64,000 nucleotides of DNA from assembly GCA_002269645.1 (NCBI GenBank), contig NIVC01003306.1:40868-104867 (forward strand). Direction: 5' to 3'. Every line of letters begins with the position of its first letter. Position 1 is the stretch's first letter. Below the pieces are notes generated by a model, which was not told the origin of the DNA, did not search any database, and was given only the letters and a program-made list of their open reading frames with translations. Source of the stretch: Macrostomum lignano (taxonomy: Eukaryota). A program made the position numbers and the translations under genes. Below are positions 21,594-45,637 of the stretch, in pieces.

Positions 21594-23246
21594 TTGCCTA
21601 GACGATATCATATTACGAATTTTACTATGAAAGCCCTTTTTCAGGATCAAGAAGTCACAATCGCAATTACTGCTGCCGTATTTTCTACATATTTTTGTAA
21701 AGAAACTGGTCAACTCGATCGCAGATGGCTTCACGAAGTCGTATTTCCTCAGTTGCGAGAAATAAATGAATTCGGAATATTTCATGTTAACAAAGAGATC
21801 ATTCGAACAAGTCTTCGTAGGAAGGGCAGCAACAGTTATTTATTACGACTAGTTTGCGCTGAATCAGCAGGCTGCAAGACAGTTATTACGTTGTCGATGG
21901 CAGATTTGCCTCTGATTGACAGTGTTAACTTAAGGTTGCAAAAGAAAAACGAGCACAGCGGCCACAGAGTGATTCTTCCAAACGACAATGTCCGCCATCT
22001 GTGGGAGCATGGTTCACAAGAGTGTCGAGAATTTGTCGCGAGTAAGGCGGCATGCAAAGACGCAAGACCGACTGAAATTTACGAGGGAAGCCTGCAGCAT
22101 TTTAAGTCAGGTAAAATATGTTCCTTAGCGTCAGTGCGACAAGCATGTAGTCGTATTCAGAATGCTTCTAGAAGAAGCCAAAACGAGCACGAAGATTTGC
22201 GCAAGCAAATGTTAGATTGGAAAATATCGCTAGTATCGGAAGACGCTGTATCTGGATTTATTCAGCGTATCAGTACGGCTCCATTTGGAGTCGTTATTTA
22301 TTGCGCGGAACAACAATTTCTTTTGCGCCAATTACTTGCCAGGAATCCCTACGCTCCAGTCCACATCGACGCAACTGGTGGGCTCGTACGAAAATCGGAA
22401 CTTATACCTGAAAATGTGCTGCTCTGCAGCGCAGTTGTTAGTTCTGAATCTGAATCTGTTGTGGCAACGCCAATAGCAGAGGCGGTATTGGAGTCCACGA
22501 AGACCGAAGATATATCCGCGTGGATTGAATCCTTTCTGCTCAATTTTGCCCGGTTTCAAGACCGAGGTGTTTGGGAAGTGTCAAAGGTTGGCCCGCGTAT
22601 TTATGTTATCGACTTCAGCTGGGTCTTTCTCCATGGCGTTCTTCGTGCTGCTGCCATAATGGATCTAGGAACGTATTTAAGAAAGCAATTCAAGCGACTA
22701 ACCTCATGGGACGTTAAACCTCCATCGTACCCACTTGTATTCATTTGCAGTTCGCATCTAATGCATCGTGTTGCAATGACGATCGCTATCAAAAACAGAG
22801 AAACGAAAAAAAACTTTCTTATCTTTTTTGCCAATCTTATTACTGCTGATAGTTTAGAAACAGCGAAGTCGGTCTGGGAGACCATGCTTCGTCTATTTTG
22901 CAGCCAGTATGTAACGTCCGTTGTGCAAGACGCTTTCGAAGTGCTTCATCAGTACAATGCTTCCTTGCCATCTAGCTGTCATGAATTTGTGAATGAAATG
23001 CCGGATCCTGAAGAGGAAAATCAATCAGGAATTTCAGTTGATCCTCCAGATTCGGAAGCTGCTACAACACTACGATCAAGTTCACCCTTTTCAGGAATTT
23101 TCGGTGTTCCTGAGCCAATCAATACCGAGGCAAAAGAGTTGAATCCTAACTTTTCTCTAGAGGCTATGCAAAAAGTCTTTAAACTTTATCTACGTACCGC
23201 TTCTGCCGATTTGGAGCGTGTGTGTTTTCAAAGGAACGCCTATTAG
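21594..23246 (+). CDS. MULE/NOF-type DDE transposase, N-terminal frame
   Basis: 550-aa ORF with a C-x5-C...H-x2-H finger, HIDATG (first D), IDFSW (second D) and the CxxH motif ICSSH. The conserved continuation YVPLLPIWS...TNAPVESWF is in the +1 frame from about 23190. Confidence 0.8.
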   Translation: MPRRYHITNFTMKALFQDQEVTIAITAAVFSTYFCKETGQLDRRWLHEVVFPQLREINEFGIFHVNKEIIRTSLRRKGSNSYLLRLVCAESAGCKTVITLSMADLPLIDSVNLRLQKKNEHSGHRVILPNDNVRHLWEHGSQECREFVASKAACKDARPTEIYEGSLQHFKSGKICSLASVRQACSRIQNASRRSQNEHEDLRKQMLDWKISLVSEDAVSGFIQRISTAPFGVVIYCAEQQFLLRQLLARNPYAPVHIDATGGLVRKSELIPENVLLCSAVVSSESESVVATPIAEAVLESTKTEDISAWIESFLLNFARFQDRGVWEVSKVGPRIYVIDFSWVFLHGVLRAAAIMDLGTYLRKQFKRLTSWDVKPPSYPLVFICSSHLMHRVAMTIAIKNRETKKNFLIFFANLITADSLETAKSVWETMLRLFCSQYVTSVVQDAFEVLHQYNASLPSSCHEFVNEMPDPEEENQSGISVDPPDSEAATTLRSSSPFSGIFGVPEPINTEAKELNPNFSLEAMQKVFKLYLRTASADLERVCFQRNAY

Positions 23247-25374
23247 CACGCACCTAACGAACGCACCTGTTGAATCCTGGTTTCGTTGGGTAAAAGCTAG
23301 AGTGCGTCGTAAAAGTGGCACGCGTTTGTTGATTGGAAACTTTCTACGGGCACAACTCGAATGTGTACTAGAGCGCATTAGTCGAGTCAAAAAGAATCAG
23401 CAGACTGTTCTTCCACCTCGGCGACCAAGACGTCGCAAGGTAAATGAAGAGGCACCTCACGTTCCCAAAGGGGACCCTTGGGCCTCCAGAGTTTCAAAAC
23501 CCTCTTACTTAGGCGGGAAAATTGCCTCAAAGCTACCGTTTAAGTGCAGCCAACTGCGTCCTGCAAGAAAATCAGAGCACCGATTTGCTCCGAAATCTGA
23601 AACTCCAACGTGTGCACTAAGTCCGCCTGCCACTCTTTCCAAGAATACTTTTATTACTGTTAAGGCAGATAACTGCGGCGAAGAGATCAAATCCGTCTAC
23701 AGAGGTTGCGTTTTCATACGCCGAGACTGCGCCAAAACTGAGATTGGCCGAGAGTGCGCAGCCACAACTGAGATTGGCCAAGAGTGCGCAGCCACAACTG
23801 AGATTGGCCGAGAGTGCGCAGCCACAACTGAGATTGGCCGAGAGTGCGCAGCCACAACTGAGATTGGCCGAGAGTGCGCAGCCACAACTGAGATTGGCCG
23901 AGAGTGCGCAGCCACAACTGAGATTGGCAAAGAGTGCGCAGCCATAACTGAGATTGGCCAAGAGTGCACAGCCACAACTGAGATTGGCCAAGAGTGCGCA
24001 GCCATAACTGAGATTGGCCAAGAGTGCGCAGCCACAACTGAGATTGGCCAAGAGTGCACAGCCACAACTGAGATTGGCCAAGAGTGCGCAGCCATAACTG
24101 AGATTGGCCAAGAGTGCGCAGCCACAACTGAGATTGGCCAAGAGTGCGCAGCCATAACTGAGATTGGCCAAGAGTGCGCAGCCACAACTGAGATTGGCCA
24201 AGAGTGCACAGCCACAACTGAGATTGGCCGAGAGTGCGCAGCCACAACTGAGATTGGCCGAGAGTGCGCAGCCACAACTGAGAATGGCCGAGAGTGCGCA
24301 GCCACAACTGAGAATGGCCGAGAGTGCCCAATCAAACTGAAGCTGGCCGAGGGTGCGCAGTCGAAACGGATGATGGCCGAGAGTTCGAAGCCAAAACGAA
24401 TGATCGCTGAGAGTCCGCAGTCAAAGCGGAGGATGGCTGAGAGTGCGCAGCCGAAGCGGAGGATGGCTGAGAGTCCGCAGCCGAAGCGGAGGATGGCTGA
24501 GAGTGCGCAGCCGAAGCGGAGGATGGCTGAGAGTCCGCAGCCGAAGCGGAGGATGGCTGAGAGTGCGCAGCCGAAGCGGAGGATGGCTGAGAGTCCGCAG
24601 CCGAAGCGGAGGATGGCTGAGAGTGCGCAGCCGAAGCGGAGGATGGCTGAGAGTCCGCAGCCGAAGCGGAGGATGGCTGAGAGTGCGCAGCCGAAGCGGA
24701 GGATGGCTGAGAGTCCGCAGCCGAAGCGGAGGATGGCTGAGAGTGCGCAGCCGAAGCGGAGGATGGCTGAGAGTCCGCAGCCGAAGCGGAGGATGGCTGA
24801 GAGTGCGCAGTCGAAGCGGAGGATGGCTGAGAGTGCACAGCCGAAGCGGAGGATGGCTGAGAGTGCGCAGTCGAAGCGGAGGATGGCTGAGAGTGCGCAG
24901 TCGAAGCGGAGGATGGCTGAGAGTGCACAGCCGAAGCGGAGGATGGCTGAGAGCGCGCAATTCAATCCAAGGACGACAGAGAGCACGCAGCTAAAAACGA
25001 GAGTGGGCAAGAGGGCGCAACCTAAACGTAGGATGGCCAACAGTGCACAGGTCAATCGCAGACAGACTTCTGTCGAGTTAAAGAGCACTAAAAACCCTTT
25101 AGTTTCGACGAGCATCAATCAACTTTTTCATTTTATGGACAAAAAAGAAAATTCTAAGTGTCCCGCTACGTCAAGAAAATTCATCACCAGTGACTCAAAA
25201 CGCCTCAAAATTCTTCCTACTGCCAGTGCAAAATCCAAAAAAAACAGAAATGAAAATTTTACTAAGGAAGAGCTCGTGCCTTGTTTCTCAACCCAAGAAA
25301 AGTATGGAAAATTCTGTATCAGGCGCTTCGATCGCGATTCTCTTCTTAGCGAGCGCAGTTGGATCAGTGTCACG
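23218..25374 (+). CDS. Transposase C-terminus (catalytic E) + two 10-aa repeat tracts + start of Ulp1 domain
   Basis: TNAPVESWFRWVK; about 20 x ECAATTEIG(R/Q); about 20 x AESAQPKRRM; ends LLSERSWISVT at the GTAAGT donor at 25375. Confidence 0.75.
23720..25055 (+). repeat. Two adjacent 30-bp coding minisatellites
   Basis: GAGTGCGCAGCCACAACTGAGATTGGCCGA (~23720-24330) and GAGTGCGCAGCCGAAGCGGAGGATGGCTGA (~24340-25055). Confidence 0.95.
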
Positions 25375-25465
25375 GTAAGTTGGTGTTGGTCTTGTGTCCT
25401 TTAAAGTCTTTTAATTACAGCTCAATTCTTAAATCCTTTTGATATGCTCAATTGACAATCAGTTC

Positions 25466-27115
25466 TGTGAATTATTTCAAAGAAAGTAAGCTTTATTTTG
25501 TAGACCGTGTTTACTGCAGAAGTAAGATTGAGGCTCCGGAAGAGCCAGTCGCTTCTATATATTTAGCGAGCACCGTACGCAAGCAACAAAGACCCTCGAG
25601 GGTCTCTCATACATGTACGCAAACCAAAAGGGGAAAAGGAAAGGAAGGAAGGAACAGCAAGCAAGCAATGGGTGACGCATCGCGATAATGAACATTCCTA
25701 CCCCACTTCCCCCAACCCCCTCTCACACCACACTACACTGTACGTCATCACACCCCTTCCCACTAAGATCTTGATCACGGAAGGTGTCATCAAAAAAAGC
25801 AAAACAAGCGATCATCAGTTGCAATCAGTCAATTGTAGGTCAGCCTCTCCGGCTTGAATCGCAGCCTGGCCGATCTCCGCGGCACCGTCCACTCCTCGGT
25901 AGCTGCTTCAGGACCAGCATCAGCAACGCCCGTCTCTGCTGCCGGGGTCTCAGGCAACTCTGCTGTTGCGAGAGGTCGATAGTTGCCTCCTTCGGGCAGC
26001 GGCAGGATGGCGGCAGACTCGCAGGCTGCGGAGACATCAAGGGGGGCCGCCGGCACAATGGACGCCGCAGGCTTGCGTACCTTCTGTTGGTCATTGGTCC
26101 ACACCCATTCGGATTCTTTCTTCATGATTCTTTCTCTCAAGGACTTGTCAGTACCGAAAAATTCACTATGAATCTTGACAAGTAATTTGCACTACCAATA
26201 AACCGTTGGAGCTGCGCTTGCTTTTCAGCACGCTGTTCGAAACGGGAGCACGAGAAATGCCCGCAGACAGATTGCCCGCCGAGATTTGCCCGCGGGGGAT
26301 TTGCCCGTGGAGATTTGCCCGCCGAGCTTTTCCCGCGGGGATTTGCCCGCAGTGCATTTTGCCCGCGAGCGAGTTGCCCGCCGAGTTTTTTCCCGCCGAG
26401 GTTTGCCCGCAATGCTTTTTTCCTGCAGCGCATTTAGCGACGCGGCAGATTTTGTCTGCATTGCCTTCCCAATGCTTAGTACGTGTTAATCTTAATAAAG
26501 AGATTTACACGATCAAAACGTTTTGATAGTAACTGCATATTAAATGCATATTTTTTTGGGGGGGGCAATACAGACAGAATCTAGCTGCCAAATGCGCTGC
26601 AGGAAAAAAGCATTGCGGGCAAACCTCGGCGGGAAAAAACTCGGCGGGCAACTCGCTCGCGGGCAAATTAAGGGCAACTCGCTCGCTCGCTGGTGGGCAC
26701 TGCGGGCAAATCTCGGCGGGCAATTTTCGGCGGGCAAATCTCCACGGGCAATTCGCTCACGGGCAAAATGCACTGCGGGCAAATCTCCGCGGGAAAAGCT
26801 CGGCGGGCAAATCTCCACGGGCAAATCTCCTGCGGGCAAATCTCGGCGGGCGGTTGGTCTGCGGGCGGTTCTCATGGACCCGTTCGAAACTGTTTGGGTG
26901 CGGCATTTCTTTGATGCTGTTTACTTTTTGTGGATCTACTTTCACACCTTTGTCAGTTAGTATGTGTCCAAGAAATCGAAGCTCAGTTTTGCCAATGCTC
27001 GTCTTTTGCCTGTTCAGAGTCAGGTTCTTTTTTCTGCATTGCTCCAAAAGATTTCGGACTGCTTGGTCGTGCTCTTCCCGAGTCTTTCCCCATACTATGA
27101 TGTCATCAATATGTA
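25466..27115 (-). mobile_element. Truncated, internally deleted Gypsy remnant within intron 1 of the transposase gene
   Basis: RT fragments IDDIIVWG...FLGHIL...VDPQKV and LQRFIGSANYLSRFI...WVWT are fused to an integrase-type tail RRSARLRFKPERL*. A polypurine tract lies at ~25695-25715, followed by a probable ~230-bp LTR (TGTT...TATA-like...AATAAA...CA) at 25694-25466. The LTR boundary is inferred. Confidence 0.75.
26244..26881. mobile_element. Mutator-like foldback MITE, 638 bp, 9-bp TSD
   Basis: TSD GTTCGAAAC at 26235-26243 and 26882-26890. GGG...CCC termini share GCCCGCAGAC. The arms are inverted GCCCGC-rich repeats. Removing the element restores the RT frame PNSFEQRAEK. Confidence 0.85.
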
Positions 27116-27810
27116 GTTAGCAGATTTTTCTACCTGACTTGTCACTTCTGCAAAGAGATTCTATAGTCGATGCATTTCATACACTATGGACATCGTCAGG
27201 TCTCAATTATTTATTAATTGAAAACAGAAGAAAAGAACTTGTTAAAAAACAGTTGACAAGGAAAAGAAAATTATTACAGTTGACGAAGGAGTCAAAGTTT
27301 AGTACTCGTATACAAAACTGGGTGCACAAGTTAGGGTGGAAAGGCATGGTGCGCATCAGATCAATCCAGTCCGGTTTTTGCGTACAATGCCTTTCCACTG
27401 AGTCTTATTGCAGTTTTCTATTTAACTTGATTGATAATGGTTCGAAACGCGTTGCATAAAGACTCATCGAATGCTGATCCTTGTGTTTCTTTTCTATATG
27501 TTCTCTTCTGAAACAGTACGCTACCATGTAATCCATGCATCCTTCCCACAGATTATTAATGCACTTCTTGCTGCCGTGGCTTCTCAGCATGACGGTGCGG
27601 CTTTTCTACTGCACTATGAAGTCGACATACTCTTTCGTGGAGTGGAAGATCAATTCACAGCTGAATTGATCGATAAGCTGCACAATGTTAGCATTATGAT
27701 TGATGTGCAGACATTACCGTAGTTTATCGATTATGGCATCGTGTCTTATTGACTAAATATTGAAACTATTGACTTTCCCATGTTTTAGGCAAAGAAAGCG
27801 ATAATTGGTA

Positions 27811-28933
27811 TGAAGTACAGGTGTCTTGCCTGTGGTTGTCTAGAGGCCTTCAATAGGAACGCTGCCCCGGTGAAGTACAGTTGCTTGAGCTCCTCTGGGA
27901 AGTCTCCGGGTTGATCTAGCGTTGGTAGTGCTGCCACCAGCTTCGCAGAGTCGCAGCCTTCGGTGAGGTGCTGAGCTCGTAGAAGCAAATAACTAAGACG
28001 AGAGAAAGAGACTCGCACTTCGTGCAGATTTAGCAGTTCTCGCGCAGAGGTGCCCACCGTCAGCAGTCCCTGCCGGGCTGGTGCGGGGTGAGAGCGAAAG
28101 TGCTAGCTTCGGGCGATCCGAGCTGGCCTGCTAATTGATAGCAGGAACAATCAGAGGCAGTCACGCGCAAAGTCGGGAGTTTGGAGTTCACTTTAAGCGT
28201 CAACTTGGCACACAACTTAGAGTTCGCTAGAAACGAAACGGAAGGAACGCTAGGAAAGCTTGGAAAGCTAGGAACGCGAGGAACGGTAGGAACGCTGAAA
28301 ACGCAGAAACGAGAGGCTGAAACGGAAGGGCCGGTTAACGGAAGGAAAGAAAGGCTTGTCTGAGCCAAGCCAGGAGAAGGGCTGCATTTATAGGGAGGAT
28401 CGATTGCACCATAGCACGAAAGGCCCCCGCTGAGAGTCATAAGTGACTCTGTTGCTATTTTTAGCAACAAACAAGCGGGCCCTGCCTCAGAGGAGGCAAG
28501 GGGGGGTCCGGGCGCACGTGATCTCCCCATAAACACGAGCCCAGCGTACAATGATGAAATCATTGCACTTTGGACTAAAGAAGGAAGAGGGCCTTGTCAT
28601 GTGACTGACTCACATGACAAGGGGAAAAGGCCCACAAGTGAAGGCACTCGTGACCGTGGGACCGGAAAACAGGAAGGCACTCCAAATTTGGAGATGCCTG
28701 ACAGAGAACGAAACAGAGGCAGGCCAGACCAAGCTGTCTGGGCACTGCAAAAAGGGAAAGCGAGACAAAAGGGGCAAACGAGGACAAACAGACAGACAGA
28801 CAAACGGGCAGAGGACAGGCCAGGGACAGGCGGGAGGGACAGGCAACTGCCCAGCGGCAGACAGAAACCTGGGGAGAAGGCGAGGGCAACAGCTGACTAG
28901 TGCGGCGCCTAACTAAACTAGCGACTCACTACA
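27811..28933 (-). repeat. 3' LTR
   Basis: Direct repeat of 36037-37158, preceded on the minus strand by PPT GGGGAGAG (28934-28941). Confidence 0.95.
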
Positions 28934-29604
28934 CTCTCCCCGTTCAAATAAAGAGGCGGAGTGAAGCGGCGCGCGCTTTATTTAAAACAAAGTAAACGTG
29001 AATTTACTGACAAAAGAAAACACACAAAATTTCAAATGCGCTCGTGAAATTGCGCGACTGGCCAGGTCGTAAAGATAGTGGCCTGATACCGCGGGGGCGC
29101 CAACCCGCTAATAGCCTGCGCCTAACTATTCCTCGTGCTCCAGCCCGCAAAATTAGTGCTCGAATTTGGTGTGGGGGCGCCGGCCCACCCTAGAAATGGC
29201 GCCTAAATATTGCGCGGGCGATACCTGAATACACAAGCCAACCGGCTTAAAATTCCTGCATAAGGGCGCTTAACTAGCGCGGCAAACGGGGCAACTTCAT
29301 TGTCAACAGGGCGTACATCAGCGTACGGCCGCCAATCAGTCAAAATAGCACAGACGCGGAGTCATCAAGAGCATCGGCAGGTCTTCTTCCCCGCCGCCCA
29401 TGAATCGGGCAACGCGGACGGCCGCCAGGTGGAGAGCGTACGGCCGGTTCGGCCGCTCCAGGTCGGGGCCGGCCAGGCCGACCGCCTCCGCGAATAACCG
29501 GCTCCTCTCCTCGGCCGTGGTTTGACGGAGCTCCGCCCAGATCGGGCCACCGAGGTCAACGATTTCTCCGCCTTGCCGAGCCGCTCTGACGAGTACAGCG
29601 CTTA

Positions 29605-32232
29605 TCAGGTTGGCGCCGGCAGCGATGACGGTAGCTCGGTATTCCGGTATTGGCGACTCCGTTTGAGTGCCGGTATCGAGCGTTTCCGCCGGACGTTCGG
29701 GCGATGGTGGCGGGGCCCTGGGCAGGGTGCGGCGCAGCGACGCGGCCAGGTCGGTCCAAACAGCTGAGGAGCATGCGGCCGCTCCCTGAGTGTCATCGGT
29801 CCAAGACATCGGAGACGGGGCCGCGTCGGGATGCCTGGCGTCGTCGAGATCCCCTCCGCGTTCATCTGTTCCGCCGGGCCTGCCGTGGTGCTCCGACCCG
29901 ACTCGCTCACGGGCCGCCGGCCGAGCCCCGTCGATGTCTGGTTCGCTGGTGTCGTGGCCGGTCCACCTCCTGGCTGCACATCCGGGATCGCCAACGGCCG
30001 GAAGCGCCACCGGAAGGCCGGCCATGCGTCATCGTCATCGTCATCATCATCGGGATCTTCCTCCGGGATCGGTGTCAGGGTCGCGGGTCCTGCACCGTCC
30101 GGGGCATCTGTCGACCTGCGGCGTTTCTTGGCCTGGTCGACTTCTGGATCCGAAGTCAGCTGGTAGTCGGCATCAGGGACGAGTAGCAGATTCCGGCGAT
30201 GGACTACTAGCTCGTCGCGCCTGGCCCGCGGGTTTGGCACTCTACGGCGAATCTTGTAGACGACCTCGCCCTTGGGTTCGACTACCTCGTACAGCGCTTT
30301 GCGAGGTCGATGGAACTTCGCCGCTTCATCCGGTTCGAGCACCGGGTTGTTGAGGAAAACCAGGTCACCAGGTTGGAGCTTCTTGGCGGCGGGCAGGTTC
30401 GAATAGTGCTCGTCGCGCAGTTGCTGATGCAGATGCAGGCGTTCTTTAGCTAGCTCAGTTGCTTCGTCTAATCGGCGCTGGAAGTCCTTGACATAGTCAG
30501 GCAGATCGGCATACTCCGGCAGCTTCTTGATCGCGTTGTCGATTGGAAGTCGGAAGTCTCGACCAAACACCAGGTAGTGAGGCGTGAAACCTGTCACCGG
30601 GTGTACACTAGAGCGGAGCGCCATCAAGCAGGCTGGGAGGAAGGTGTCCCAGTCGTTATGGTTGCGCTCGAGGAGGCAGGTGAGGACACTCTTCAGCTGC
30701 TTGTTGAGGTTCTCGACTTGCCCATTAGAAGCTGGGTTGTACGGTGTTGTCGTCGTATGCCGGATGCCAAACAGGTCACAGAACTTCTTGAACGCTGAGC
30801 CAGTGAAATTGGTTCCTTGATCAGTGTGTATCCAGCATGGTACACCAAAGTCAGGGATCAAGCGCTCCTGCAGAATCTTGATGACCGTCTTGGCTTTCTG
30901 GTTCCTCATCGGATAGGCGAACGGGTACTTCGACGTCGCGTCGCATAGCGTCAAGATGTAGCGGTTCCCGCTCTTGCTCTTCTGGGCAATTGGGCCTACT
31001 ACGTCGCAGTGTACTCTTCCCAGAACTTCGCACACAGGGAAGCTCTGTACAGGTACTCGGTCTCGTCTTCGGGATTTACTTTCAAGACAGGCGCGGCACT
31101 TACTGATAAAGTTCTCGGTGACACGGGCTAATCCGGGCCTCCAGAATCGTTCACGTAGCCGCTTCAACGTCTTCGTCTGGCCGAGGTGTCCACACAGTGG
31201 CGAACTGTGGAGCTCCTGGAGCACCTGGGCATCAAGAGACTCAGGCAGGACAACCTTCGGGGACTGCTGGCCGTCGGTCAGGTCGATCATCAGCAGGCCG
31301 TTGTCCTCTAGCAGATTATCATAATATCCGAGCAGGTTCCGCTGCTCCTTCGTCAGTCGCAACCGGGTGTCGAACTCAGGCTTCAGGGCTTTGTTCTCGA
31401 CCAAGTTGAGCACATAGCCAATTGCTCGGTCGGCGCGCTGCGCGTCGACAAACTGTTGCCGCGTCATCGGCAACCTCATAAAATCGGTGAGCACGGCGCG
31501 GCATGGCTGAGGGTTCATGACTCCCGCAGTCTCCGCTTCTGTGGCTCGCAGTTGATCACACGACTCCGTCTTGTCGGCGTCAGGATTAGGTCGCTCCGAG
31601 GGACTTTGTTTCACAACGTCGGCGTACGATCGCTGATCTCGTTTCGAAGTTCTCATCGTCGCTCTCTTGACAGGAATTTCCGCAGCTGGAGCAGTGCACT
31701 TGCCTCCACTGCACAGCCCAGGCGACTCTTGGCTGTAGGGCGAGACGCAACACGTGAAGCACGCCTCGTCACAAGCAGCCGTAGCCGTCGGCTCGATCAT
31801 CGTCGTCATTGGGTGAGTCTTCTCCAGCACTGGGCGGTGTCGCAAAGGGGGACTCGACTGTCCGCACAGGCGATGAGCAGCTGTCTGTCGGCTCGGGGGA
31901 CAGAGCGTTGACCTTGCAGCCGTCGCGAGAGTATGGCCTCTGTCAACACGGCGAGAACTCTCAGCGCAAAACTCCGGGGAGTTGAACTTACATTGCTGGT
32001 CTGGATTCGCGTTGTGGGCTGTCATCAGAAGGGCTGCTTGTTCAGTGGCCTCTGAGTCGTGGTCCATGGGCGTCTCCAGATTCCGAGACCCGCAGTCTTG
32101 GACATCATCAAGGAGGTCTACGTCAGCAGTGGCCTCCGAGGTTTTGTCCGGGCGAATCTCCAAGTAACGGCAGTCGGCGTGGGCGTCGCTGCGGAGGGCT
32201 GAGGTGTCAGTGGCCTCCGGGTTGGTGTCCAA
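29605..32232 (-). CDS. Gypsy integrase with long N-terminal linker (pol, second frame)
   Basis: HSSPLCGHLG...CRAC HHCC finger; HCDVVGP, TDQGTNF and VENLNK (D-D-E); GPY/F-like C-terminal module. Out of frame with RT/RH; the frames overlap at about 32415-32207. Confidence 0.9.
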   Translation of the reverse strand: MDTNPEATDTSALRSDAHADCRYLEIRPDKTSEATADVDLLDDVQDCGSRNLETPMDHDSEATEQAALLMTAHNANPDQQCKFNSPEFCAESSRRVDRGHTLATAARSTLCPPSRQTAAHRLCGQSSPPLRHRPVLEKTHPMTTMIEPTATAACDEACFTCCVSPYSQESPGLCSGGKCTAPAAEIPVKRATMRTSKRDQRSYADVVKQSPSERPNPDADKTESCDQLRATEAETAGVMNPQPCRAVLTDFMRLPMTRQQFVDAQRADRAIGYVLNLVENKALKPEFDTRLRLTKEQRNLLGYYDNLLEDNGLLMIDLTDGQQSPKVVLPESLDAQVLQELHSSPLCGHLGQTKTLKRLRERFWRPGLARVTENFISKCRACLESKSRRRDRVPVQSFPVCEVLGRVHCDVVGPIAQKSKSGNRYILTLCDATSKYPFAYPMRNQKAKTVIKILQERLIPDFGVPCWIHTDQGTNFTGSAFKKFCDLFGIRHTTTTPYNPASNGQVENLNKQLKSVLTCLLERNHNDWDTFLPACLMALRSSVHPVTGFTPHYLVFGRDFRLPIDNAIKKLPEYADLPDYVKDFQRRLDEATELAKERLHLHQQLRDEHYSNLPAAKKLQPGDLVFLNNPVLEPDEAAKFHRPRKALYEVVEPKGEVVYKIRRRVPNPRARRDELVVHRRNLLLVPDADYQLTSDPEVDQAKKRRRSTDAPDGAGPATLTPIPEEDPDDDDDDDDAWPAFRWRFRPLAIPDVQPGGGPATTPANQTSTGLGRRPVSESGRSTTAGPAEQMNAEGISTTPGIPTRPRLRCLGPMTLRERPHAPQLFGPTWPRRCAAPCPGPRHHRPNVRRKRSIPALKRSRQYRNTELPSSLPAPT

Positions 32233-34732
32233 ACCGGTCTCCAGGCGTTGACTGCAGCGATGGTTGTCGTGCTGAAGGACTGCTGGCGCAGTGGCCTCCA
32301 GGTCTTCGGCCAGGGCAGTTTCGGCCTCCTTGTTGCGAGTGTGGACCTTCTTCGAAAGGGCTGGTCTTGCAGTGGCCTTCCGGTGGTGTCCAGGTCCGGC
32401 TCCAAGCTGGTGTCATCATCGTGTCGGGCTGCAGAATCGGGATGCTCAGCAGTCGGCCGTGCTCGAAGTCAACCGGTGGTGTCTCCGGGCGTCTTGACAG
32501 GGCGTCAGCGTTGGCGTGGTCCTTGCCTTTGCGATGGTGAAGCTGGAAGCGGAACTCGCTTAATCGCTCAATCCAACGGCCCAAGATGCCTGTGACCTGC
32601 GTCTGGTTCAGCAGCCACAGCAAGGCCCGATGGTCAGAACGAACTTCAAACTTCTTGCCGATTAAATAATGACGGAAATGTCGCATCGCGTCCACGATTG
32701 CAAGCAGCTCTTTCTTCGTGACCGTGTAGCGCTTCTCAGGATCACGAAGCTTCCGGCTAAAGAATGCAATTGGGCGCTCGACGCCGTCGGATTGCCGTTG
32801 TCCAAGACAAGCGCCTATGCGAATGTCTGAGGCATCCGTGTCTAGGACAAACTTCACATTAGGATCTGAGTTAAACTCAGGCAGAGCGAGAACTTCAGTC
32901 GAACACAACTTCTTCTTCAACGTGTCGAACGCTACCTGGTGCTCATCAGTCCAATGCTGCCGCAGGCTGCCGATGTCCTTTCGAGTCAGGGCATGTAGCG
33001 GCGCAGCAAATCCAGCGTAGCCGTTGACAAACTTGTGGTAGTAATTGGCGAGGCCTAGGAATTGTCTCAGTTGAGTAACGGACTGTGGCACGGGCCAATC
33101 ACGGATCTGCGCAATCTTGTCCTCACAGGTCTTCAGGCCGTCGGGAGTCACGACGTGGCCTAGATAATGCAGCTCCTTGAGGAACAAATGGCACTTCTTC
33201 GGCTTGACCTTGAGGTTGGCTGCGATAATCCGCTGGAGTACAGTCCGCAGGTTGTCCAGCTGCTCCTCGAAGGTCACAGAGTGCACCACGATGTCATCCA
33301 TGTAGCCAAGCGCAGTCTTTGGCGTCAGGCCGTCCAGGAGCTTATTGATGCAACGCTGAAAGCTGCCTGGACTATCGTGGAGACCCATCGGTAGAACATT
33401 GAAACAGAATTGTCCGCGGTCAATCACAGAGAACGCCGTCAGGTGCTGATCGCAGTCGCGCAGCGGGATCTGCCAGAATCCTTGAGCGAGATCCAAGCTA
33501 GAGTACCACTGGGCACCACGCAGCTTCGCGAAGGTCTCCTGAATGTGCGGCAGCGGGTACGGGTGGTACACACACTTGTCGTTGAGAGCTCTGAAGTCAT
33601 GCACCAGCCTGATGTTGCCGTCCTTCTTGGGCACTATCAGCATTGGCGAGTTGTAGCTAGAATAAGCCGGGCGAATGATGTGCTTCGCCAGCATCTCGTC
33701 TAGCAGGGCGTCTAGCTTGTCCTTCAGATGAGGCGGGATCCTGCGCGGTGGTAGCGCAACTGGTGTCCGATCCTTCAGGATGATCTCGTGGGTCACCAGG
33801 TGTGTCAGGCCAGCGTCTAGCAGATGCTTCGAGAAGGCTGCTTGACACTCAACTAGTAGATCTCGCACTCTCTGTCGTTGATCTTCGGACAGCTCGCTGT
33901 TGATCTCGACTTCCTCTAGCCAAGCTGTGCTGGACTCTTCAGGGCTCCTTGGCAAATGTCGCACTTCAGGTTCCGGCGTCTCTTCCAGGTACATCAGGTC
34001 GGCAGTTCTAAGTGGTGTCGCAACACCAACGCGGATGCCCGACTGCAGGAACACCTCACAGTCAGCAGTGTTGACGACCTCGATGTAGCCTCGACCTTCA
34101 GGCATAGTCATCAGAGCTGGAGCTGCTTCCAGAGTGTTGCAGCTGGGGTGCAGTCTCGACTTCACCAGCTCGACGATTGATGGCGATCCTCGGTTCTCGG
34201 GGTGGCCGACATCCAACTGGACGGCCAACAGCGCTGAACTTCTCGGCGGCAGAGTGCACTTCTCGGAGGTGTACACCCGGCATGATTGAAGCTCACGGCG
34301 CGAATAGCGAACGGGAATGCACGCGCCATTGTTGAACTTTAACATTCCTTGCGCAAAGTCCAAGTTTTGGCAGTGTTCACGCATGAAATTAATACCAAGC
34401 AAATTTTCACAATCGGTGACCGTGACCAGGAATTCGGTGTCCGCGACGACATCACCAAACTCCACCGGGATGATCACCTTACACGCAAGGGGTAGCTGCG
34501 TACCGTCGTACATGGTCACGCAATCCGGGATAGCATGCGATATGATACAACGAGGCATCCGACGTCTAACATTGGCCCAGGTCGACGCTCCAAGAAAGTT
34601 TTTCCGACTGCCGCTGTCTAGTAGGAAAGGGACTTCTCGGCCCGCCAATCGGCCGGTGACGTACGGATCAGCCTCACGCGCATGGATTTTTTGATCATCG
34701 GAGGTGTCCACGAAACCTCCGCTCAGCCTCAC
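32207..34732 (-). CDS. Gypsy pol: aspartic protease, reverse transcriptase, RNase H
   Basis: LLDSGS protease, YMDDIVV RT, and TDASD...ELLAI...SDHRAL...ADALSR RNase H motifs. Confidence 0.95.
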   Translation of the reverse strand: MRLSGGFVDTSDDQKIHAREADPYVTGRLAGREVPFLLDSGSRKNFLGASTWANVRRRMPRCIISHAIPDCVTMYDGTQLPLACKVIIPVEFGDVVADTEFLVTVTDCENLLGINFMREHCQNLDFAQGMLKFNNGACIPVRYSRRELQSCRVYTSEKCTLPPRSSALLAVQLDVGHPENRGSPSIVELVKSRLHPSCNTLEAAPALMTMPEGRGYIEVVNTADCEVFLQSGIRVGVATPLRTADLMYLEETPEPEVRHLPRSPEESSTAWLEEVEINSELSEDQRQRVRDLLVECQAAFSKHLLDAGLTHLVTHEIILKDRTPVALPPRRIPPHLKDKLDALLDEMLAKHIIRPAYSSYNSPMLIVPKKDGNIRLVHDFRALNDKCVYHPYPLPHIQETFAKLRGAQWYSSLDLAQGFWQIPLRDCDQHLTAFSVIDRGQFCFNVLPMGLHDSPGSFQRCINKLLDGLTPKTALGYMDDIVVHSVTFEEQLDNLRTVLQRIIAANLKVKPKKCHLFLKELHYLGHVVTPDGLKTCEDKIAQIRDWPVPQSVTQLRQFLGLANYYHKFVNGYAGFAAPLHALTRKDIGSLRQHWTDEHQVAFDTLKKKLCSTEVLALPEFNSDPNVKFVLDTDASDIRIGACLGQRQSDGVERPIAFFSRKLRDPEKRYTVTKKELLAIVDAMRHFRHYLIGKKFEVRSDHRALLWLLNQTQVTGILGRWIERLSEFRFQLHHRKGKDHANADALSRRPETPPVDFEHGRLLSIPILQPDTMMTPAWSRTWTPPEGHCKTSPFEEGPHSQQGGRNCPGRRPGGHCASSPSARQPSLQSTPGDRFGHQPGGH

Positions 34733-35902
34733 TTACTGATGAGAGATTGTCGGACTGGGCATTGGCGCCTGCGCAGCCGACATCCTCTTCTTCTGGTGAG
34801 CGTTCGGAGTCTGCCAAGTAGCCGGGGCTTGGGCTCTGCGGAGGGCGTTGCCGTGGGCGCTCTCCGTCTCGCCGTTTCCCTGGTTCTGGCGTAACGGGCA
34901 CTGTGCATTGCGATGACCAGGCTGACCGCAGCCATAGCAGATCATGGCTTTCGAAGGCGGACTCGTCTTCTGCTGCTGGTCACGCTGCACCAGGTTGTCT
35001 AGCAGTCGCTGCTGTTTCTCTAGCAGATCAGTCAGAGCCAGGAGAGCTTGAGCGGTGGCGTCGGGCGTCGGGTCACCGTCGCGCTCCCCGTTCAGCATGC
35101 GAACCGGGGGTTGAGCAGAGCGCTGCGCCAGTTCCTTGGCGCCTTCCAGACGATGGAGTTCTCGAATAGCGGCCAGCAGATTGTTCGGGCGGACCCAATA
35201 GAGCCGCTCGCGCAGATCTGGTGTCGTCCTGATGCCAGCTAGGAACTGATCAGCCAGCTCCCGCTCTCGATCCTCAGGGTGCATTCGAGGGTACGCTCGC
35301 TCTCCCAAGGTGCGCAGGGCATCAGCGTACTCTTCTGCTGACTCATTCTTGCCTTGCTGACGGCGCCTCAGCAGCTCTCGATATTCATCCGCGCCACCGT
35401 GGCGGGCGAATCTCTCGATCAGTCGCTGCCTGACCTCCTCGTAGCCAGCATAGCGTGGGAGGTGCATACTGAGCAGAGCCGGGTAAGCGGTTGCCAGATC
35501 TAGACTCGCAACGAGGTGCTGCTTCATCTCGATCGGGTCTTCGATACGCTCCATCTCGCAGCGCTGCTCGAACGCGGCGAGCCAGACGTGGATGTCCTGG
35601 CTGGGCGTGTACTTTACAATCTTAACAGATTTGCTTACCGGCCGCTCCATCTGCTGCTGCAGAGCTGCCATCATCGTTCTCACATCCTGGGGCCTGATGT
35701 TCTGGCCGAGGTCGTCCAAACCTGGCAGAAGCTCGTCTGGCGGGTCTTCGGACACTTCGCTTCTCGCACTTCGCCGCGGCATCTGCTGACCAAGGTCGTT
35801 GACCGCTGCTGCTGCGGCAGCCGATGCTGCTGCAGGTCTCGAACTGCTGATGTGCTGATCCAGCCGGCTGCTGCACCGGCTCTCTTCTCTCTCGTTAAAC
35901 AT
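34733..35902 (-). CDS. Gypsy gag
   Basis: 389 aa with a capsid-like region (QGKNESAEEYADALR) and the CCHC knuckle CYGCGQPGHRNAQC. Confidence 0.92.
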   Translation of the reverse strand: MFNEREESRCSSRLDQHISSSRPAAASAAAAAAVNDLGQQMPRRSARSEVSEDPPDELLPGLDDLGQNIRPQDVRTMMAALQQQMERPVSKSVKIVKYTPSQDIHVWLAAFEQRCEMERIEDPIEMKQHLVASLDLATAYPALLSMHLPRYAGYEEVRQRLIERFARHGGADEYRELLRRRQQGKNESAEEYADALRTLGERAYPRMHPEDRERELADQFLAGIRTTPDLRERLYWVRPNNLLAAIRELHRLEGAKELAQRSAQPPVRMLNGERDGDPTPDATAQALLALTDLLEKQQRLLDNLVQRDQQQKTSPPSKAMICYGCGQPGHRNAQCPLRQNQGNGETESAHGNALRRAQAPATWQTPNAHQKKRMSAAQAPMPSPTISHQ

Positions 35903-36012
35903 TTCAAACTAGTAGAATAGCCGAATTCTTACTCGAAAGAGCGGTTGTCTTGGGTGTAGTAGTAGTCGAATCTTGACTTGTCGGATCCCAGATAGTCGTG
36001 TCGTTGACTCGT

Positions 36013-36036
36013 CGAATCCCACCGCTGAGTCACCAA
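36013..36036 (-). other. Primer-binding site
   Basis: TGGTGACTCAGCGGTGGGATTCGA immediately follows the 5' LTR. It resembles the complement of a tRNA-Leu 3' end with a 2-nt bulge; the tRNA assignment is inference. Confidence 0.75.
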
Positions 36037-37158
36037 TGAAGTACAGGTGTCTTGCCTGTGGTTGTCTAGAGGCCTTCAATAGGAACGCTGCCCCGGTGAA
36101 GTACAGTTGCTTGAGCTCCTCTGGGAAGTCTCCGGGTTGATCTAGCGTTGGTAGTGCTGCCACCAGCTTCGCAGAGTCGCAGCCTTCGGTGAGGTGCTGA
36201 GCTCGTAGAAGCAAATAACTAAGACGAGAGAAAGAGACTCGCACTTCGTGCAGATTTAGCAGTTCTCGCGCAGAGGTGCCCACCGTCAGCAGTCCCTGCC
36301 GGGCTGGTGCGGGGTGAGAGCGAAAGTGCTAGCTTCGGGCGATCCGAGCTGGCCTGCTAATTGATAGCAGGAACAATCAGAGGCAGTCACGCGCAAAGTC
36401 GGGAGTTTGGAGTTCACTTTAAGCGTCAACTTGGCACACAACTTAGAGTTCGCTAGAAACGAAACGGAAGGAACGCTAGGAAAGCTTGGAAAGCTAGGAA
36501 CGCGAGGAACGGTAGGAACGCTGAAAACGCAGAAACGAGAGGCTGAAACGGAAGGGCCGGTTAACGGAAGGAAAGAAAGGCTTGTCTGAGCCAAGCCAGG
36601 AGAGGGCTGCATTTATAGGGAGGATCGATTGCACCATAGCACGAAAGGCCCCCGCTGAGAGTCATAAGTGACTCTGTTGCTATTTTTAGCAACAAACAAG
36701 CGGGCCCTGCCTCAGAGGAGGCAAGGGGGGGTCCGGGCGCACGTGATCTCCCCATAAACACGAGCCCAGCGTACAATGATGAAATCATTGCACTTTGGAC
36801 TAAAGAAGGAAGAGGGCCTTGTCATGTGACTGACTCACATGACAAGGGGAAAAGGCCCACAAGTGAAGGCACTCGTGACCGTGGGACCGGAAAACAGGAA
36901 GGCACTCCAAATTTGGAGATGCCTGACAGAGAACGAAACAGAGGCAGGCCAGACCAAGCTGTCTGGGCACTGCAAAAAGGGAAAGCGAGACAAAAGGGGC
37001 AAACGAGGACAAACAGACAGACAGACAAACGGGCAGAGGACAGGCCAGGGACAGGCGGGAGGGACAGGCAACTGCCCAGCGGCAGACAGAAACCTGGGGA
37101 GAAGGCGAGGGCAACAGCTGACTAGTGCGGCGCCTAACTAAACTAGCGACTCACTACA
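36037..37158 (-). repeat. 5' LTR
   Basis: 1122-bp direct repeat of 27811-28933. Confidence 0.95.
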
Positions 37159-40100
37159 GGTACAATATATCGCAACCAACACTTTATGCTTTTGTTCGTG
37201 GACCTGGAGCGGCACAATGTAGCAGTTTTGGATCCTCTTTTGTCATCCGAGCAACTTAACATTTCAATATGTGCTAACTTAAAGTAAGTTGGTGCTCAAA
37301 GTATTTAAATTGTCTCAATGCAAGTATTTGAAAGTATTCTAAACTGTCGTTTGTGTCTCACTCCCCATCTTTTGTTGATTGTCGGTAATTTATCGTTAAT
37401 CGTTAATTATCGGTAATTTATTTAATTATTCATCAAGACGTCAACACAGAAGTTCTTTGGTAAAAAAATTAGCAAAAAATGGATGCGGGGTTAAAAATTG
37501 GAAAAATGAGCACCAGTGAAGCGCCAGGCACACGACCAGTTTTAATAAAGCTCTACAGGGGGGAGCAAGCAGGTAAGCATGCATACGAGTACACCCATCT
37601 CGACCCACACCCACCCCAGCACAGAACACTGGTTTGTACTGCCTGTACGAAACTATGACGCTTAAGAAAAATTGTAGGCAATTTTAGGGTTGGCCAGTCC
37701 ACCACAATGACCGCCAGTCAGTCGCGATCAAGTACCCGAGTCATGACGCTCATGACCTTGCCTTATGATATTGTGTCAAGGATCTTACCTTTTTAGCTAC
37801 TATTCGCGACACTGGTTGAATTGCCAGATTGCCTAAGATACTCGTATCTAGGGCGGATCACTGGCGCCGAATGTCTATTTAATATATTTTATCAATACCA
37901 AACGACCTGCGCGACCCAACAGTCACCTCTTATCACGAGTACTAATTACTTATATTAGTACTCTATTTTTTACTAAACTGATTGCTGATTAGACAGGAAA
38001 CTAACGCATTCCATTATGTTTGTTGTTCTATTACTGCTCGTGTTTTATTCTGCCCTCAGCTCCGTTCGACACTGCTTTGGCTGGCATGAAATGCAGCCTA
38101 TTACTATAAAGCACTCGATTCAGCAGGACGGGAATAGCTGCGGAGTGCTAGTGTGTAAATTCGCTGATTTGCTACTATCCGATAGCTCACTAAATATCAA
38201 TTCGGCACCAAGAGAGATGGCTCTGAGCCGTTTGGAATTGTGGAAAACTTTGCTCCTCAGGGCGGTTGACCAAGAAAATTTATGCTGGATGTGTGGAGAG
38301 AAAGAGGCGGCTTCACATGATGGTGCCTACGATAATTGGGTGAGTAGTATGCATTGGTTTGTAAGTTTTAGCGAAGATTATACCTTATGCGTACGAGTAC
38401 GAAGCGTTATTACGATGTCGTAAATTTCGGAAATGTATCAAAAAGAGATTTCATAAAGGTATTGCTGAGCAGTGTCTTGGCAGTAAACTCCAATTTAGAT
38501 TTTTCCTTCTCCTTTCAGATACAGTGCGAAAAATGTTTCATCTGGTTCCACGAAGCGTGCATTCGACAATCATGCATTTCAACTTGTGTCTTCTGTGACA
38601 GGATTTGACTTGCACTTTTGTGCAACTTTGTTACGAGGTGTATCCAAAATGAAAGAGTCTATCGATAATAATGGTTATGTGATTCATTTAACTTTAATTT
38701 ATGTGGATATCAGAACGACAAATGCTTTTTTATGTTTCTTTCGGGCAGCATTTTTTGCATTAAGTATCCTCCGCCAAGACGTTTGCAATTCGGTATTCAA
38801 CCCCCCATCCTCCTAGGATTGCAGATCTGGTGACGGTTTTATTAGCACGTTCCTAATTAGCATGTATACAAGCAGAATACCAGATTCGGAGACTCATTTT
38901 TATCCTCTAGAAAAGTATCTGCTGGTGGTAAATTCGATATCAATTCGGCCCTAAATTGGGTGATCAATTTGATTACGGGCACTGTTGTCGGAATATTACC
39001 CACTGCCGATGGCATCCTTTACCTGATTCGTTATGGTTCGTACCTGCTTTACCTTTGTAAGTCACGTGCTTCGTTTTTTTATTTTTGACACAGCCTTATT
39101 TTTTAACTATGATGAAAGCCTACAGTGCATTTATGGCAAGATAATAGCTGTATCCATACTGGTACTACCGGTAGTGTACCATAGAGTTTAAACAATCATA
39201 CTGAAGCAGTGCAACTAAAGACAAAATGTGATAGCACATATCATTACTAGACATGACTGCAATATCTGCGTATGGTATGCGCCCATTTGTGACCATACAG
39301 ACGTAGACGTTTATTATGTAAGCAAGACTTTGTGGTCAAGAGCCGTTCCTGAATTCACTAGTGCCCGCTCTTGGCTATAGAATAAACAATCTTTAAAGTC
39401 GGTAAATACCATGGTAGCTAGTAACGCTTTCTTCACAGACTTTATCATGCTATATTTTTCCGTTGTTTAATTGAAATTTTGTTTTCAACGTAAGCTGTAA
39501 ATTTGAACTCGAAATAAATTTCGAAGTTTTTACCGATTGACATACGTGGCAATTAAAAATGTGTTGTTTGTGCATTTTAAGCAGCTAATTAATATTTCAT
39601 AATTTAGTTATTTGGGCCTAAAGGGCTTTCTATTGTAGTACAACAACACCAACACGTAAAGCAATTTTTTCTCTAGCGTACAATTTCTACAGTTTTTTAT
39701 TCTGCACTTAAGGAGTTAAGCGCTTCCAAACCATGTTTTTTCTCTATGTATCCAAATATTTATTTTGCATTTGAACTTTCTTGTTTTTTTGCTACAATTT
39801 GCTACAATTGCTACACTTGCTACAATTATGGACAAGCATTTTTTTATTGCAATATTTTTGCTATTAAGTAAATTATTAAACATGCATCGTTAGATTTTTT
39901 CGGGCAAGTCCTGCCCTGTCTTTCCTTTAAAAAAATCGACTTTCTCTCAGTTTCCGTTCGTTTTATTTGCAACGAATAATGGATCACCAACGCAAAAATA
40001 ATTAAAACATCATTTTTTCACACACAAGAATTTACCAAAAGCAAAGCTAACTACAGGCAAGTTCAGCGCTTACAGACGCTGCCAGTCATAAGAATATAGA

Positions 40101-44600: not shown

Positions 44601-45134
44601 CCCGACAGTTAAATTCGGCCATATCCCGACAGTTAATGCTTCGTCCCGACAGTTAATGCTTCGTCCCGACAGTAAAATTCGGCCATATCCCGACAGTTAA
44701 TGCTTCGTCCCGACAGTTAATGCTTCGTCCCGACAGTTTATGCTTTGTCCCGACAGTTAATGCTTCGTCCCGACAGTTAAATTCGGCCATATCCCGACAG
44801 TTAATGCTTCGTCCCGACAGTTAATGCTTCGTCCCGACAGTTAATGCTTCGTCCCGACAGTAAAATTCGGCCATATCCCGACAGTTAATGCTTCGTCCCG
44901 ACAGTTATATTCGGCCATATCCCGACAGTCATTGCTTCGTCCCGACAGTTAATGCTTCGTCCTGACAGTTAAATTCGGCCATATCCCGACAGTTAATGCT
45001 TCGTCCCGACAGTTAATGCTTCGTCCCGACAGTAAAATTCGGCCATATCCCGACAGTTAATGCTTTGTCCCGACAGTTATATTCGGCCATATCCCGACAG
45101 TTAATGATTCGTCCCGACAGTTAATGCTTCGTCC

Positions 45135-45637
45135 TCCAGAGGCGCTGTCCCTCAGCCCTCTCACCAGCTCCGGAAGCTCCTCTTGCGCCTCTCGCGCAGA
45201 GACATCCGGGCTGCCACCATGACCCTCTCTGGTCACGGCTGCTTCTCCAGGCACCAGTACCTGCAGGGCAACGCCACCAACGCCACCTGTAGTTTCTGCA
45301 ACTCAGGTGACGAAACCGCTGAGCATTTCGTCAGCATCTGTCCCGCCTTCACGCGGGCCAGACTCACTTACCTCGGGCCACACACATCTATTACTGAAGC
45401 GTGCAAACCCGAAAACTTTAATCAGCTCATGCGCTACCTTCGGGCCACCCGCAGGGCTGAACTCTCCTTTCCAGAGAGCACCATAGCTGCTGGCGACACT
45501 GGGGGACCTCCCTGGGCGGCGCCAACCCTCCGTCCATAGCGACGCGTCGGCCGTTCAGGGACTAGCGGAATGGGCGCCCGCGCCTTCCCGCTGTGTCCCC
45601 TCCGGGACAGCCCTGCAGCTAAGTCAAGTAAGTCAAG
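45135..45637 (+). mobile_element. 5'-truncated LINE 3' end, copy 1
   Basis: ORF2 C-terminal motif SGHG...CSFC...ETAEHFVSICP (CCHC), (TAAGTCAAG)n tail, and TSD TAATGCTTCGTCC taken from the satellite unit. Confidence 0.88.

Follow-up and report, generated by a model that had tools for sequence, protein, structure and literature searches.

The DNA analysed here is a stretch of 64,000 nucleotides from Macrostomum lignano (positions 40,868 to 104,867 of contig NIVC01003306.1, assembly GCA_002269645.1), hereafter called the window, and all coordinates are those of the window unless another copy is named. We conclude that positions 16162-51113 very probably constitute one copy of a multi-copy DNA transposon of the Rehavkus group, that this transposon carries a single gene of five exons, and that the present copy is dead or crippled. 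By family design, the gene product consists, in order, of an N-terminal zinc-finger DNA-binding region, an Asp-Asp-Glu (DDE) transposase with a CxxH motif, a basic linker with a coding 30-bp minisatellite, a clan-CE cysteine protease of the Ulp1/SENP type, and a C-terminal PHD finger. The original prediction, made from the sequence of the window alone, had proposed such a polyprotein spread over 17 kb. What it described appears to be the design of the family, but the copy in the window is broken by a 4-bp frameshift and by the insertion of a long terminal repeat (LTR) retrotransposon.

Structure of the element and its gene

The element is about 35 kb long and is bounded by a perfect pair of 66-bp terminal inverted repeats (TIRs), which proved to be unique in a window-wide search. 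The left one lies 5.4 kb before the gene and the right one 12.5 kb after it, and each is directly adjoined by a copy of the same 9-bp target-site duplication (TSD). The same TIRs bound a copy at another genomic site, L006, which is one of three further M. lignano copies inspected (L002, L005 and L006); cluster look-ups brought further copies to light. TIR candidates closer to the gene (18.0-21.7 kb against 38.5-42.5 kb) were also considered, and were rejected as chance matches only. The features of the element and its gene are as follows, with the lesions of this copy listed further below.

16153-16161, no strand: left TSD, 9 bp, TGTCTGTCT, an identical 9-mer directly outside both TIRs
16162-16227, plus strand: left TIR, 66 bp, starting ACGTGTATAACATTTACCGAC, with three CGATATTCC motifs, 100% complementary to 51048-51113
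21627-23190, plus strand: first 521 codons of the transposase open reading frame (ORF), with an N-terminal Cys/His zinc-finger-like domain, the catalytic Asp motifs (HIDATGG, VIDFSW) and CxxH (CSSH)
23195-23730, plus strand: C-terminal part of the transposase and basic linker, with PLLPIWS and THLTNAPVESWFRWVK, which bears the catalytic Glu
23731-24959, plus strand: coding minisatellite, 41 x 30 bp, open in all six frames
24960-25374, plus strand: tail of exon 1, linker plus start of the Ulp1 domain (…SWISVT)
25374, plus strand: end of exon 1, followed by a gtaagt donor (splice-site inspection)
25375-27551, plus strand: intron 1, containing an old foldback-like repeat and a reverse transcriptase (RT) fragment; also in L002
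27552-27686, plus strand: exon 2, preceded by cacag and followed by gt; N-terminal helices of Ulp1
27789-27810, plus strand: exon 3, part 1, 22 bases, preceded by tttag; its last four bases, GGTA (27807-27810), are a TSD copy of the LTR element
37163-37283, plus strand: exon 3, part 2, with the catalytic His (37180-82) and Asp (37231-33), followed by gtaagt
38060-38339, plus strand: exon 4, ctcag acceptor and gtgagt donor, with the Gln (38121-23), the Cys (38139-41) and the first Cys pair of the PHD finger (CWMC)
38519-38608, plus strand: exon 5, ttcag acceptor, rest of the PHD finger (CEKC…H..C…C..C) and TGA stop
41694-50694, plus strand: array of 20-bp units (ATGCTTCGTCCCGACAGTTA), 9 kb, about 350 bp inside the right TIR; also in L006
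51048-51113, minus strand: right TIR, 66 bp
51114-51122, no strand: right TSD, TGTCTGTCT

Every border of exons 1 to 5 is canonical (AG/GT) and the phases fit, as the original prediction had held for its five exons. When the coding sequence (CDS) is joined from 23218, its length is divisible by three and it contains no internal stop. Exon 2 is 100% identical to its counterparts in L002, L005 and L006. The spliced C-terminal product, 353 residues long, is 100% identical to the M. lignano protein PAA52069.1 of GenBank (BOX15_Mlig000140g29), which is the transcript-derived model at this very locus (NIVC01003306.1, GCA_002269645.1). The sequence of its contig agrees with window 14370-48608 at 100%. 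The gene models of GCA_002269645.1 were obtained by mapping RNA-seq data and a de novo transcriptome to the genome, with ORFs called by TransDecoder, and the assembly contains much near-identical duplicated sequence (PMC5730564). Both the transposase and the protease-PHD part lie inside one element bounded by TIRs and TSDs, in agreement with the earlier proposal that they belong to one gene of one transposon. The 20-bp array inside the right end has no inverted counterpart at the left end.

The transposase belongs to the Rehavkus group

An intact transposase, P0002, was used as the query for an exhaustive HMMER protein search, which returned 459 homologues at E<=1e-3. A word-indexed protein search had returned only M. 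lignano proteins and, when run with the profile, five unnamed matches, and the exhaustive search was needed. An alignment of 30 of the transposase homologues, A1, served as the source of the family profile. In A1, residues D242, T244, D323, N538 and E542 are invariant, while C368, H371, P520, W522 and K549 are near-invariant; we read this set as a DDE triad accompanied by a CxxH motif.

The DDE domains of Rehavkus and of canonical MULE elements were taken from the supplement of PMC13359780 for comparison. The A1 profile matches the DDE domains of Rehavkus-1_TC, -1_HR, -1_DY and -2_NVi from end to end, at 257, 201, 150 and 108 bits, respectively; the canonical MULE domains match it only at E>8. 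P0002 alone scores 46.8 bits against Rehavkus-1_TC and 38.5 bits against Rehavkus-1_HR. The assignment as Rehavkus-like and MULE-related, suggested at the outset, is thus borne out by four Rehavkus DDE domains.

No integrase-family Pfam match was found in the transposase, and a PDB sequence search with P0002 and the family profile gave nothing meaningful. The core of the transposase is modelled by AlphaFold with a predicted local distance difference test score (pLDDT) above 90, and the sole significant fold match of this model in the PDB is the IS256-family transposase of ISCth4 (6xgx, 6xg8; E 1.5e-4, probability 1.0), at about 10% sequence identity and with low TM-scores (0.19 / 0.34). IS256 is the accepted prokaryotic relative of the Mutator transposases.

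The protease and the PHD finger

The spliced C-terminal part scores 26.7 bits with Pfam Peptidase_C48 (PF02902), whose gathering score is 20.7. The solved structures of SENP2 and SENP1 align with the window protease at the positions of His, Asp, Gln and Cys, in that order and with the spacing of SENP proteases, so that the catalytic set first described from the sequence is indeed intact. When eight homologous C-terminal domains are aligned with that of the window, His96, Gln151 and Cys157 prove to be invariant, as do all eight zinc ligands of the PHD finger. The AlphaFold model of the C-terminal part is of moderate confidence (pLDDT 67). A Foldseek search with the protease model retrieves SENP1, SENP5, SENP2 and yeast Ulp1 (E 5e-7 to 5e-6, TM 0.5-0.65, probability 1.0), and poxvirus I7L is also among its fold matches. 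The finger follows the Cys4-His-Cys3 pattern of PHD domains (C-x2-C-x17-C-x2-C-x4-H-x2-C-x8-C-x2-C) with a last loop shorter than usual, and its best sequence matches in the PDB are the PHD fingers of PHF1 and ALFIN-LIKE 3 (E ~0.003). Given the C48 score above threshold, the alignment with SENP proteases, the invariant residues and the fold match, both the protease and the finger are real.

Two lesions in the window copy

The copy in the window differs from its relatives by an insertion within the transposase and by a second, much larger one within the protease.

23191-23194, plus strand: 4-bp insertion TACG (placement ambiguous up to 23197), missing from L002, L005 and L006
27811-37158, minus strand: nested Ty3/Gypsy-type LTR retrotransposon, 9,348 bp, splitting exon 3
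27811-28933 and 36037-37158, minus strand: its LTRs, 1.12 kb each, with TG…CA ends, differing by one 1-bp indel
27807-27810 and 37159-37162: its TSD, GGTA, 4 bp

The nested retrotransposon encodes gag with a zinc knuckle, followed by pol in the order protease-RT-RNaseH-integrase, which places it among Ty3/Gypsy elements, and it matches RVT_1, RT_RNaseH, rve and Integrase_H2C2 of Pfam. The site is empty in L002, L005 and L006, where exon 3 is uninterrupted; these are copies without the LTR insertion, of the kind that the original prediction had suggested looking for. The inserted element is very young. Because the TSD reads GGTA and the LTR ends are TG…CA, the interval 27808-37159 starts with GT, ends with AG and constitutes a perfect intron-like segment, whose removal restores exon 3 exactly. 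This GT…AG interval is what enables the GenBank model to treat the retrotransposon as an intron of 9.35 kb. For what had been taken for a single exon 3, the outer borders (27789 and 37283) hold, but the exon consists of 27789-27810 and 37163-37283, split by the 9,348-bp element.

The 4-bp insertion puts the first 521 codons of the transposase out of frame. The ORF from 21627 stops at 23246, while the ORF that reaches the donor of exon 1 opens at 23161 in another frame; hence 21627-23190 is out of frame with 23161-25404, and the earlier reading of exon 1 as one ORF from 21627 does not hold. Without TACG, coordinate arithmetic brings 21627-23190 into frame with 23195-25374 as one ORF. In the window copy, the protease shares its frame only with the last part of the transposase, which includes the catalytic Glu motif. 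We further observed cTA-CG-TAccg at 23191-23197, in contrast to cTAccg in the sister copies; this duplication of TA around two bases resembles an excision footprint of a Tc1/mariner element, a comparison that is speculative.

Given the 4-bp frameshift and the LTR insertion, the window copy does not encode the polyprotein. The single ORF by which Rehavkus is recognized is likewise not found in this copy, which has a frameshift, an interruption by the LTR element and four introns.

One gene or two

The linker minisatellite lies between transposase and protease. Its translation consists of ECAATTEIGQ repeats, a step of 89 nt and then RRMAESAQPK repeats; that is, it uses two frames within one ORF. 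Because the array is open in all frames, an uninterrupted frame across it says little when only one copy is considered. The array is 1,229 bp long in the window and 1,002 bp in L002 (6699-7701 of that copy), and as the difference is not a multiple of three, the frame is broken in L002. In that copy, the frame of the transposase (4566-7217) ends within the array, and exon 1 of the protease forms an ORF of its own that begins with ATG (7445-8146). In L005, one CDS of 806 residues (PAA72330.1) runs from mid-transposase through the catalytic Glu motif, the array, the linker and Ulp1 to the stop codon of the PHD finger. In L006, one frame of 1,073 codons contains the complete transposase, the array and the linker (PAA65919.1); the model joins exon 2 at the same junction. 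Thus each copy is broken differently, and every junction is in frame in some copy.

The wider family was considered as well. Nine long homologues carry the same Ulp1-PHD module at the extreme C-terminus, and such carriers include Tribolium castaneum XP_015833640.1 and Ceutorhynchus assimilis CAG9764290.1. Several relatives with Ulp1-PHD are single ORFs that fill contigs of 4-7 kb, one of them with 1,610 residues on 5,069 nt. Because the module sits on distant transposases, because these relatives are single ORFs and because PAA72330.1 is one CDS, a transposase-Ulp1-PHD polyprotein appears to be the design of the family. A selection analysis of the window copy against L002 was considered, but the two differ by only about 0.1-0.2% substitutions and exons 2-5 are identical, too little to draw any inference from.

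A number of observations count against our reading of the element and its gene. None of the four copies inspected (window, L002, L005 and L006) is intact: the window has its two lesions, L002 the frame break in the array, L005 the loss of one base at the position that corresponds to window 22958, and L006 a frameshifting 1-bp indel shortly before exon 1 ends. Some of the indels could be errors of long-read assembly. Exon 5 found no match in L006, nor is a TSD recognisable at that copy. In the GenBank models, transposase and protease are separated both at the window and at L002, in each case inside the minisatellite; such splitting may be an artefact of short-read assembly. Pfam detects nothing in the window transposase ORF, in its C-terminal part or in P0002, including MULE (PF10551) and Transposase_mut (PF00872), and a single faint match (E 0.11) appears among the 30 relatives. 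The catalytic Asp of the protease is replaced by Asn in some relatives. Finally, the finger of the window protein scores 11.8 bits with Pfam PHD (PF00628), below the gathering score of 24. The finger that had been described as intact keeps all of its zinc ligands but misses the Pfam threshold, and the proposed HMMER search of the spliced product returns Peptidase_C48 but neither MULE nor, above threshold, PHD.

Two other explanations of the arrangement were weighed. The transposon may contain two genes, with the transposase ending in the minisatellite and the Ulp1-PHD protein starting at a Met codon inside the repeat, and with separate mRNAs arising, for example, by spliced-leader trans-splicing of a polycistronic precursor. 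The interrupted frame and separate protease ORF of L002 would fit this, as would the separate GenBank models at the window, at L002 and at contig 156,981 (g14/g15); moreover, transcription units of M. lignano often contain several trans-spliced genes (PMC5730564). However, PAA72330.1 and PAA65919.1 both cross the array in one frame, the array of the window is in frame, the relatives are single ORFs, and the breakpoints of the split models fall precisely within the repeat, where assembly from short reads breaks down. We hold two genes to be unlikely.

It could also be argued that Ulp1-PHD is a host gene that came to lie beside an unrelated transposase ORF by chance or capture, the fusion being an artefact of annotation, since the protease part has four spliceosomal introns and its own transcript-based gene model. 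Yet both parts are found in one element bounded by TIRs and TSDs and occur together in at least four copies, one of them at a different site; the same C-terminal module is present on homologous transposases in beetles and in metagenomic/SRA contigs; and the lesions are copy-specific, as in decaying copies of a transposon. A neighbouring host gene of this kind is scarcely credible, and we retain the single fused gene as the preferred reading.

A sister family with a different protease

M. lignano also contains a sister family, whose transposase (P0003) is a paralogue at 39% identity. Its elements occupy 5687-18590 of L003 and 6319-18580 of L004. Their TIRs are 1.3-1.9 kb long, 100% identical and filled with 11/63-bp tandem repeats, and the two insertion sites have the TSDs GTACACTGT (9 bp) and TTATTAAT (8 bp). 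The family looks recently mobile. Its termini (ACGTATGAAACATTCGCCGAC) are homologous to those of the window element. In place of Ulp1-PHD, a USP/UCH domain (PF00443, 33 bits; L003 13574-14086) follows the transposase, and an unrelated coding minisatellite of 90-bp units occupies the same linker position before it (L003 11997-12413). A search with tblastn and a purpose-built hidden Markov model found no Ulp1-PHD exons downstream of the P0003 paralogue. The sister family further has a minus-strand ORF of 379 codons with a 78-bp repeat (14932-16071).

Among 43 long homologues of the transposase, Pfam detects PHD in 13, C48 in 6, YqaJ exonuclease in 4, OTU in 2 and UCH in 1. In three relatives from outside the window (P0059, P0073 and P0143), a YqaJ/alkaline-exonuclease domain separates an internal PHD finger from the Ulp1-PHD at the C-terminus, which makes them five-module proteins of about 1,450-1,600 residues.

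Comparison with known elements

Rehavkus is grouped with MULE (Yuan & Wessler 2011; Dupeyron et al. 2019, PMC6446971). It has been described as having a 9-bp TSD, TIRs of 26-400 bp, a minisatellite before the 3' TIR and a PHD finger, and the papers record it from arthropods and annelids only. The DDE domain studied here is homologous end to end with those of Repbase Rehavkus-1_TC from Tribolium castaneum and -1_HR from Helobdella robusta. The window element also shares with Rehavkus the 9-bp TSD, TIRs within the published range (66 bp), the minisatellite before the 3' TIR and the PHD finger. In Tribolium, Rehavkus is published as having long TIRs filled with tandem repeats, and the kilobase-long, repeat-filled TIRs of the M. 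lignano sister family are similar. Unlike published Rehavkus, the window element resides in a flatworm, its gene has introns, and this copy is interrupted and frameshifted. The original prediction took it as established that Rehavkus-like elements carry C48 proteases. The present Rehavkus-type family does, but the open papers that could be searched mention only the PHD finger and the minisatellite, and contain no link of Rehavkus with Ulp1, USP, OTU or YqaJ.

The Ginger1 elements of Hydra offer a parallel, in that Ginger1-9_HM carries Ulp1 and PHD while others carry OTU (Bao et al. 2010, PMC2836005). As in our family, a C-terminal Ulp1 domain, with PHD in one family, is joined to a DDE transposase, and Ulp1 alternates with a protease of the deubiquitinase type. 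The Ginger1 transposase, in contrast, is a DDE enzyme resembling the Gypsy integrase, with YPYY, H2C2 and GPY/F motifs; the transposase of the window lacks any integrase signature and finds its matches in Rehavkus and IS256. Ulp1 domains are also known in Mutator elements, namely the KI-MULEs of plants (Arabidopsis, melon and rice) and MuDR-type elements of hydra and lancelet (PMC2836005). Across Mutator and Ginger1 elements, Ulp1 is on record both accompanied by PHD and alone. These resemble the window element in being members of the MULE superfamily with Peptidase_C48, but they differ in that the window transposase has no Pfam MULE match and the A1 profile leaves canonical MULE DDE domains unscored. 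The Ulp1 part of plant MULEs is usually regarded as a captured fragment of a host gene.

The window transposase has an IS256-like RNase H fold with a DDE triad and a C/DxxH motif. ISCth4, the best fold match of its predicted core, has neither protease nor PHD finger; according to its entry and paper, it reportedly transposes by copy-out/paste-in.

Possible function of the C-terminal module

DNA transposases joined to a Ulp1 or OTU protease have been on record since about 2006-2010, in MULEs, Ginger1 and Helitrons. To our knowledge, the role of such a protease in a DNA transposase has never been shown. In the mechanism that we envisage, the DDE domain would perform cut-and-paste transposition of the element, while the protease, as an accessory, would take SUMO, ubiquitin or NEDD8 off proteins of chromatin or repair where the element transposes, or off the transposase. 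The PHD finger may tether the protein to histone H3 tails, given that its closest solved sequence relatives are the PHD fingers of histone-tail readers; it could equally serve the choice of target site rather than anti-silencing. The histone reading, the deSUMOylation or self-processing and the anti-silencing role put forward in the original prediction are conjecture.

Alternatively, the protease might process the polyprotein to free the transposase, as adenain or the poxvirus I7 core protease do with their substrates, and have no role on host SUMO or ubiquitin. Clan CE does include viral processing proteases, poxvirus I7L is among the fold matches, and the linker contains an LGG|K motif (SYLGGKIA). 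This GG motif was considered as a cleavage site in support of self-processing, but was rejected, as it is not conserved in the alignment of relatives. Furthermore, the presence of USP or OTU at the equivalent position fits selection for deconjugation better than it fits a specific site of cleavage in cis. We therefore consider self-processing to be quite unlikely, and favour deconjugation as the more likely activity of the module, given that unrelated deubiquitinases (USP and OTU) take the place of Ulp1 in relatives and that the GG of the linker is not conserved.

Tentatively, and with more doubt than confidence, this may be extended to the group: Rehavkus may carry an exchangeable C-terminal chromatin cassette (PHD together with one of the three unrelated proteases Ulp1, USP or OTU, and sometimes YqaJ), such that the removal of SUMO or ubiquitin from factors of chromatin or repair would be an integral and repeatedly selected step of transposition or of escape from SUMO-dependent silencing.

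Other features of the element and the window

The foldback-like repeat in intron 1 (26241-26884) is made of 14-bp GC-rich units, with arms at 26241-26389 and 26736-26884, and the RT fragment lies on the minus strand at 26757-27047. Both are common to the window and L002, and must therefore be older than the LTR insertion. The 20-bp array near the right end has two embedded tails of non-LTR retrotransposons (45183-45539 and 48232-48588, 3,049 bp apart). These are identical ORFs of 118 codons with a Cys/His motif typical of such tails, and their identity and spacing indicate that the array grew by higher-order duplication. The 5' region of the diverged copy L006 harbours a nested transposase gene of the Tc1/mariner type (Pfam Transposase_1; 6499-7266 of that copy).

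Another element, at 10866-16159, adjoins the left TSD. It has inverted repeats of 379 nt (10866-11244 and 15781-16159) that are 94% identical, and a 186-bp tandem repeat lies within it at 15664-16079. Further tandem arrays are found at 6774-8481, 52963-53509, 54750-55606, 57430-58452, 60151-60567 and 61037-61958, with units of 219 bp (7.8 copies at 99% identity) and of 32, 33, 20, 30 and 16 bp; the Rehavkus terminus motif is absent from these arrays. A 2-kb stretch at 60-62 kb has a GC skew of +0.40.

Significance

Taken together, our results describe an element of a known kind in a decayed copy, and their modest novelty concerns the phylum of the host and the exchangeable protease cassette of Rehavkus. 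They document a Rehavkus family in Platyhelminthes, beyond the range of arthropods and annelids, and they reveal that Rehavkus transposases are recurrently accompanied by PHD and Ulp1, USP or OTU, sometimes with YqaJ. For the annotation of the M. lignano genome, they explain a 'hypothetical protein' of GenBank, whose 9.3-kb 'intron' is a young retrotransposon. Finally, a method of transgenesis exists for M. lignano. With a Ulp1 family and a USP family present in this one organism, the hypothesis that these modules act as deconjugases or counter silencing is open to test.

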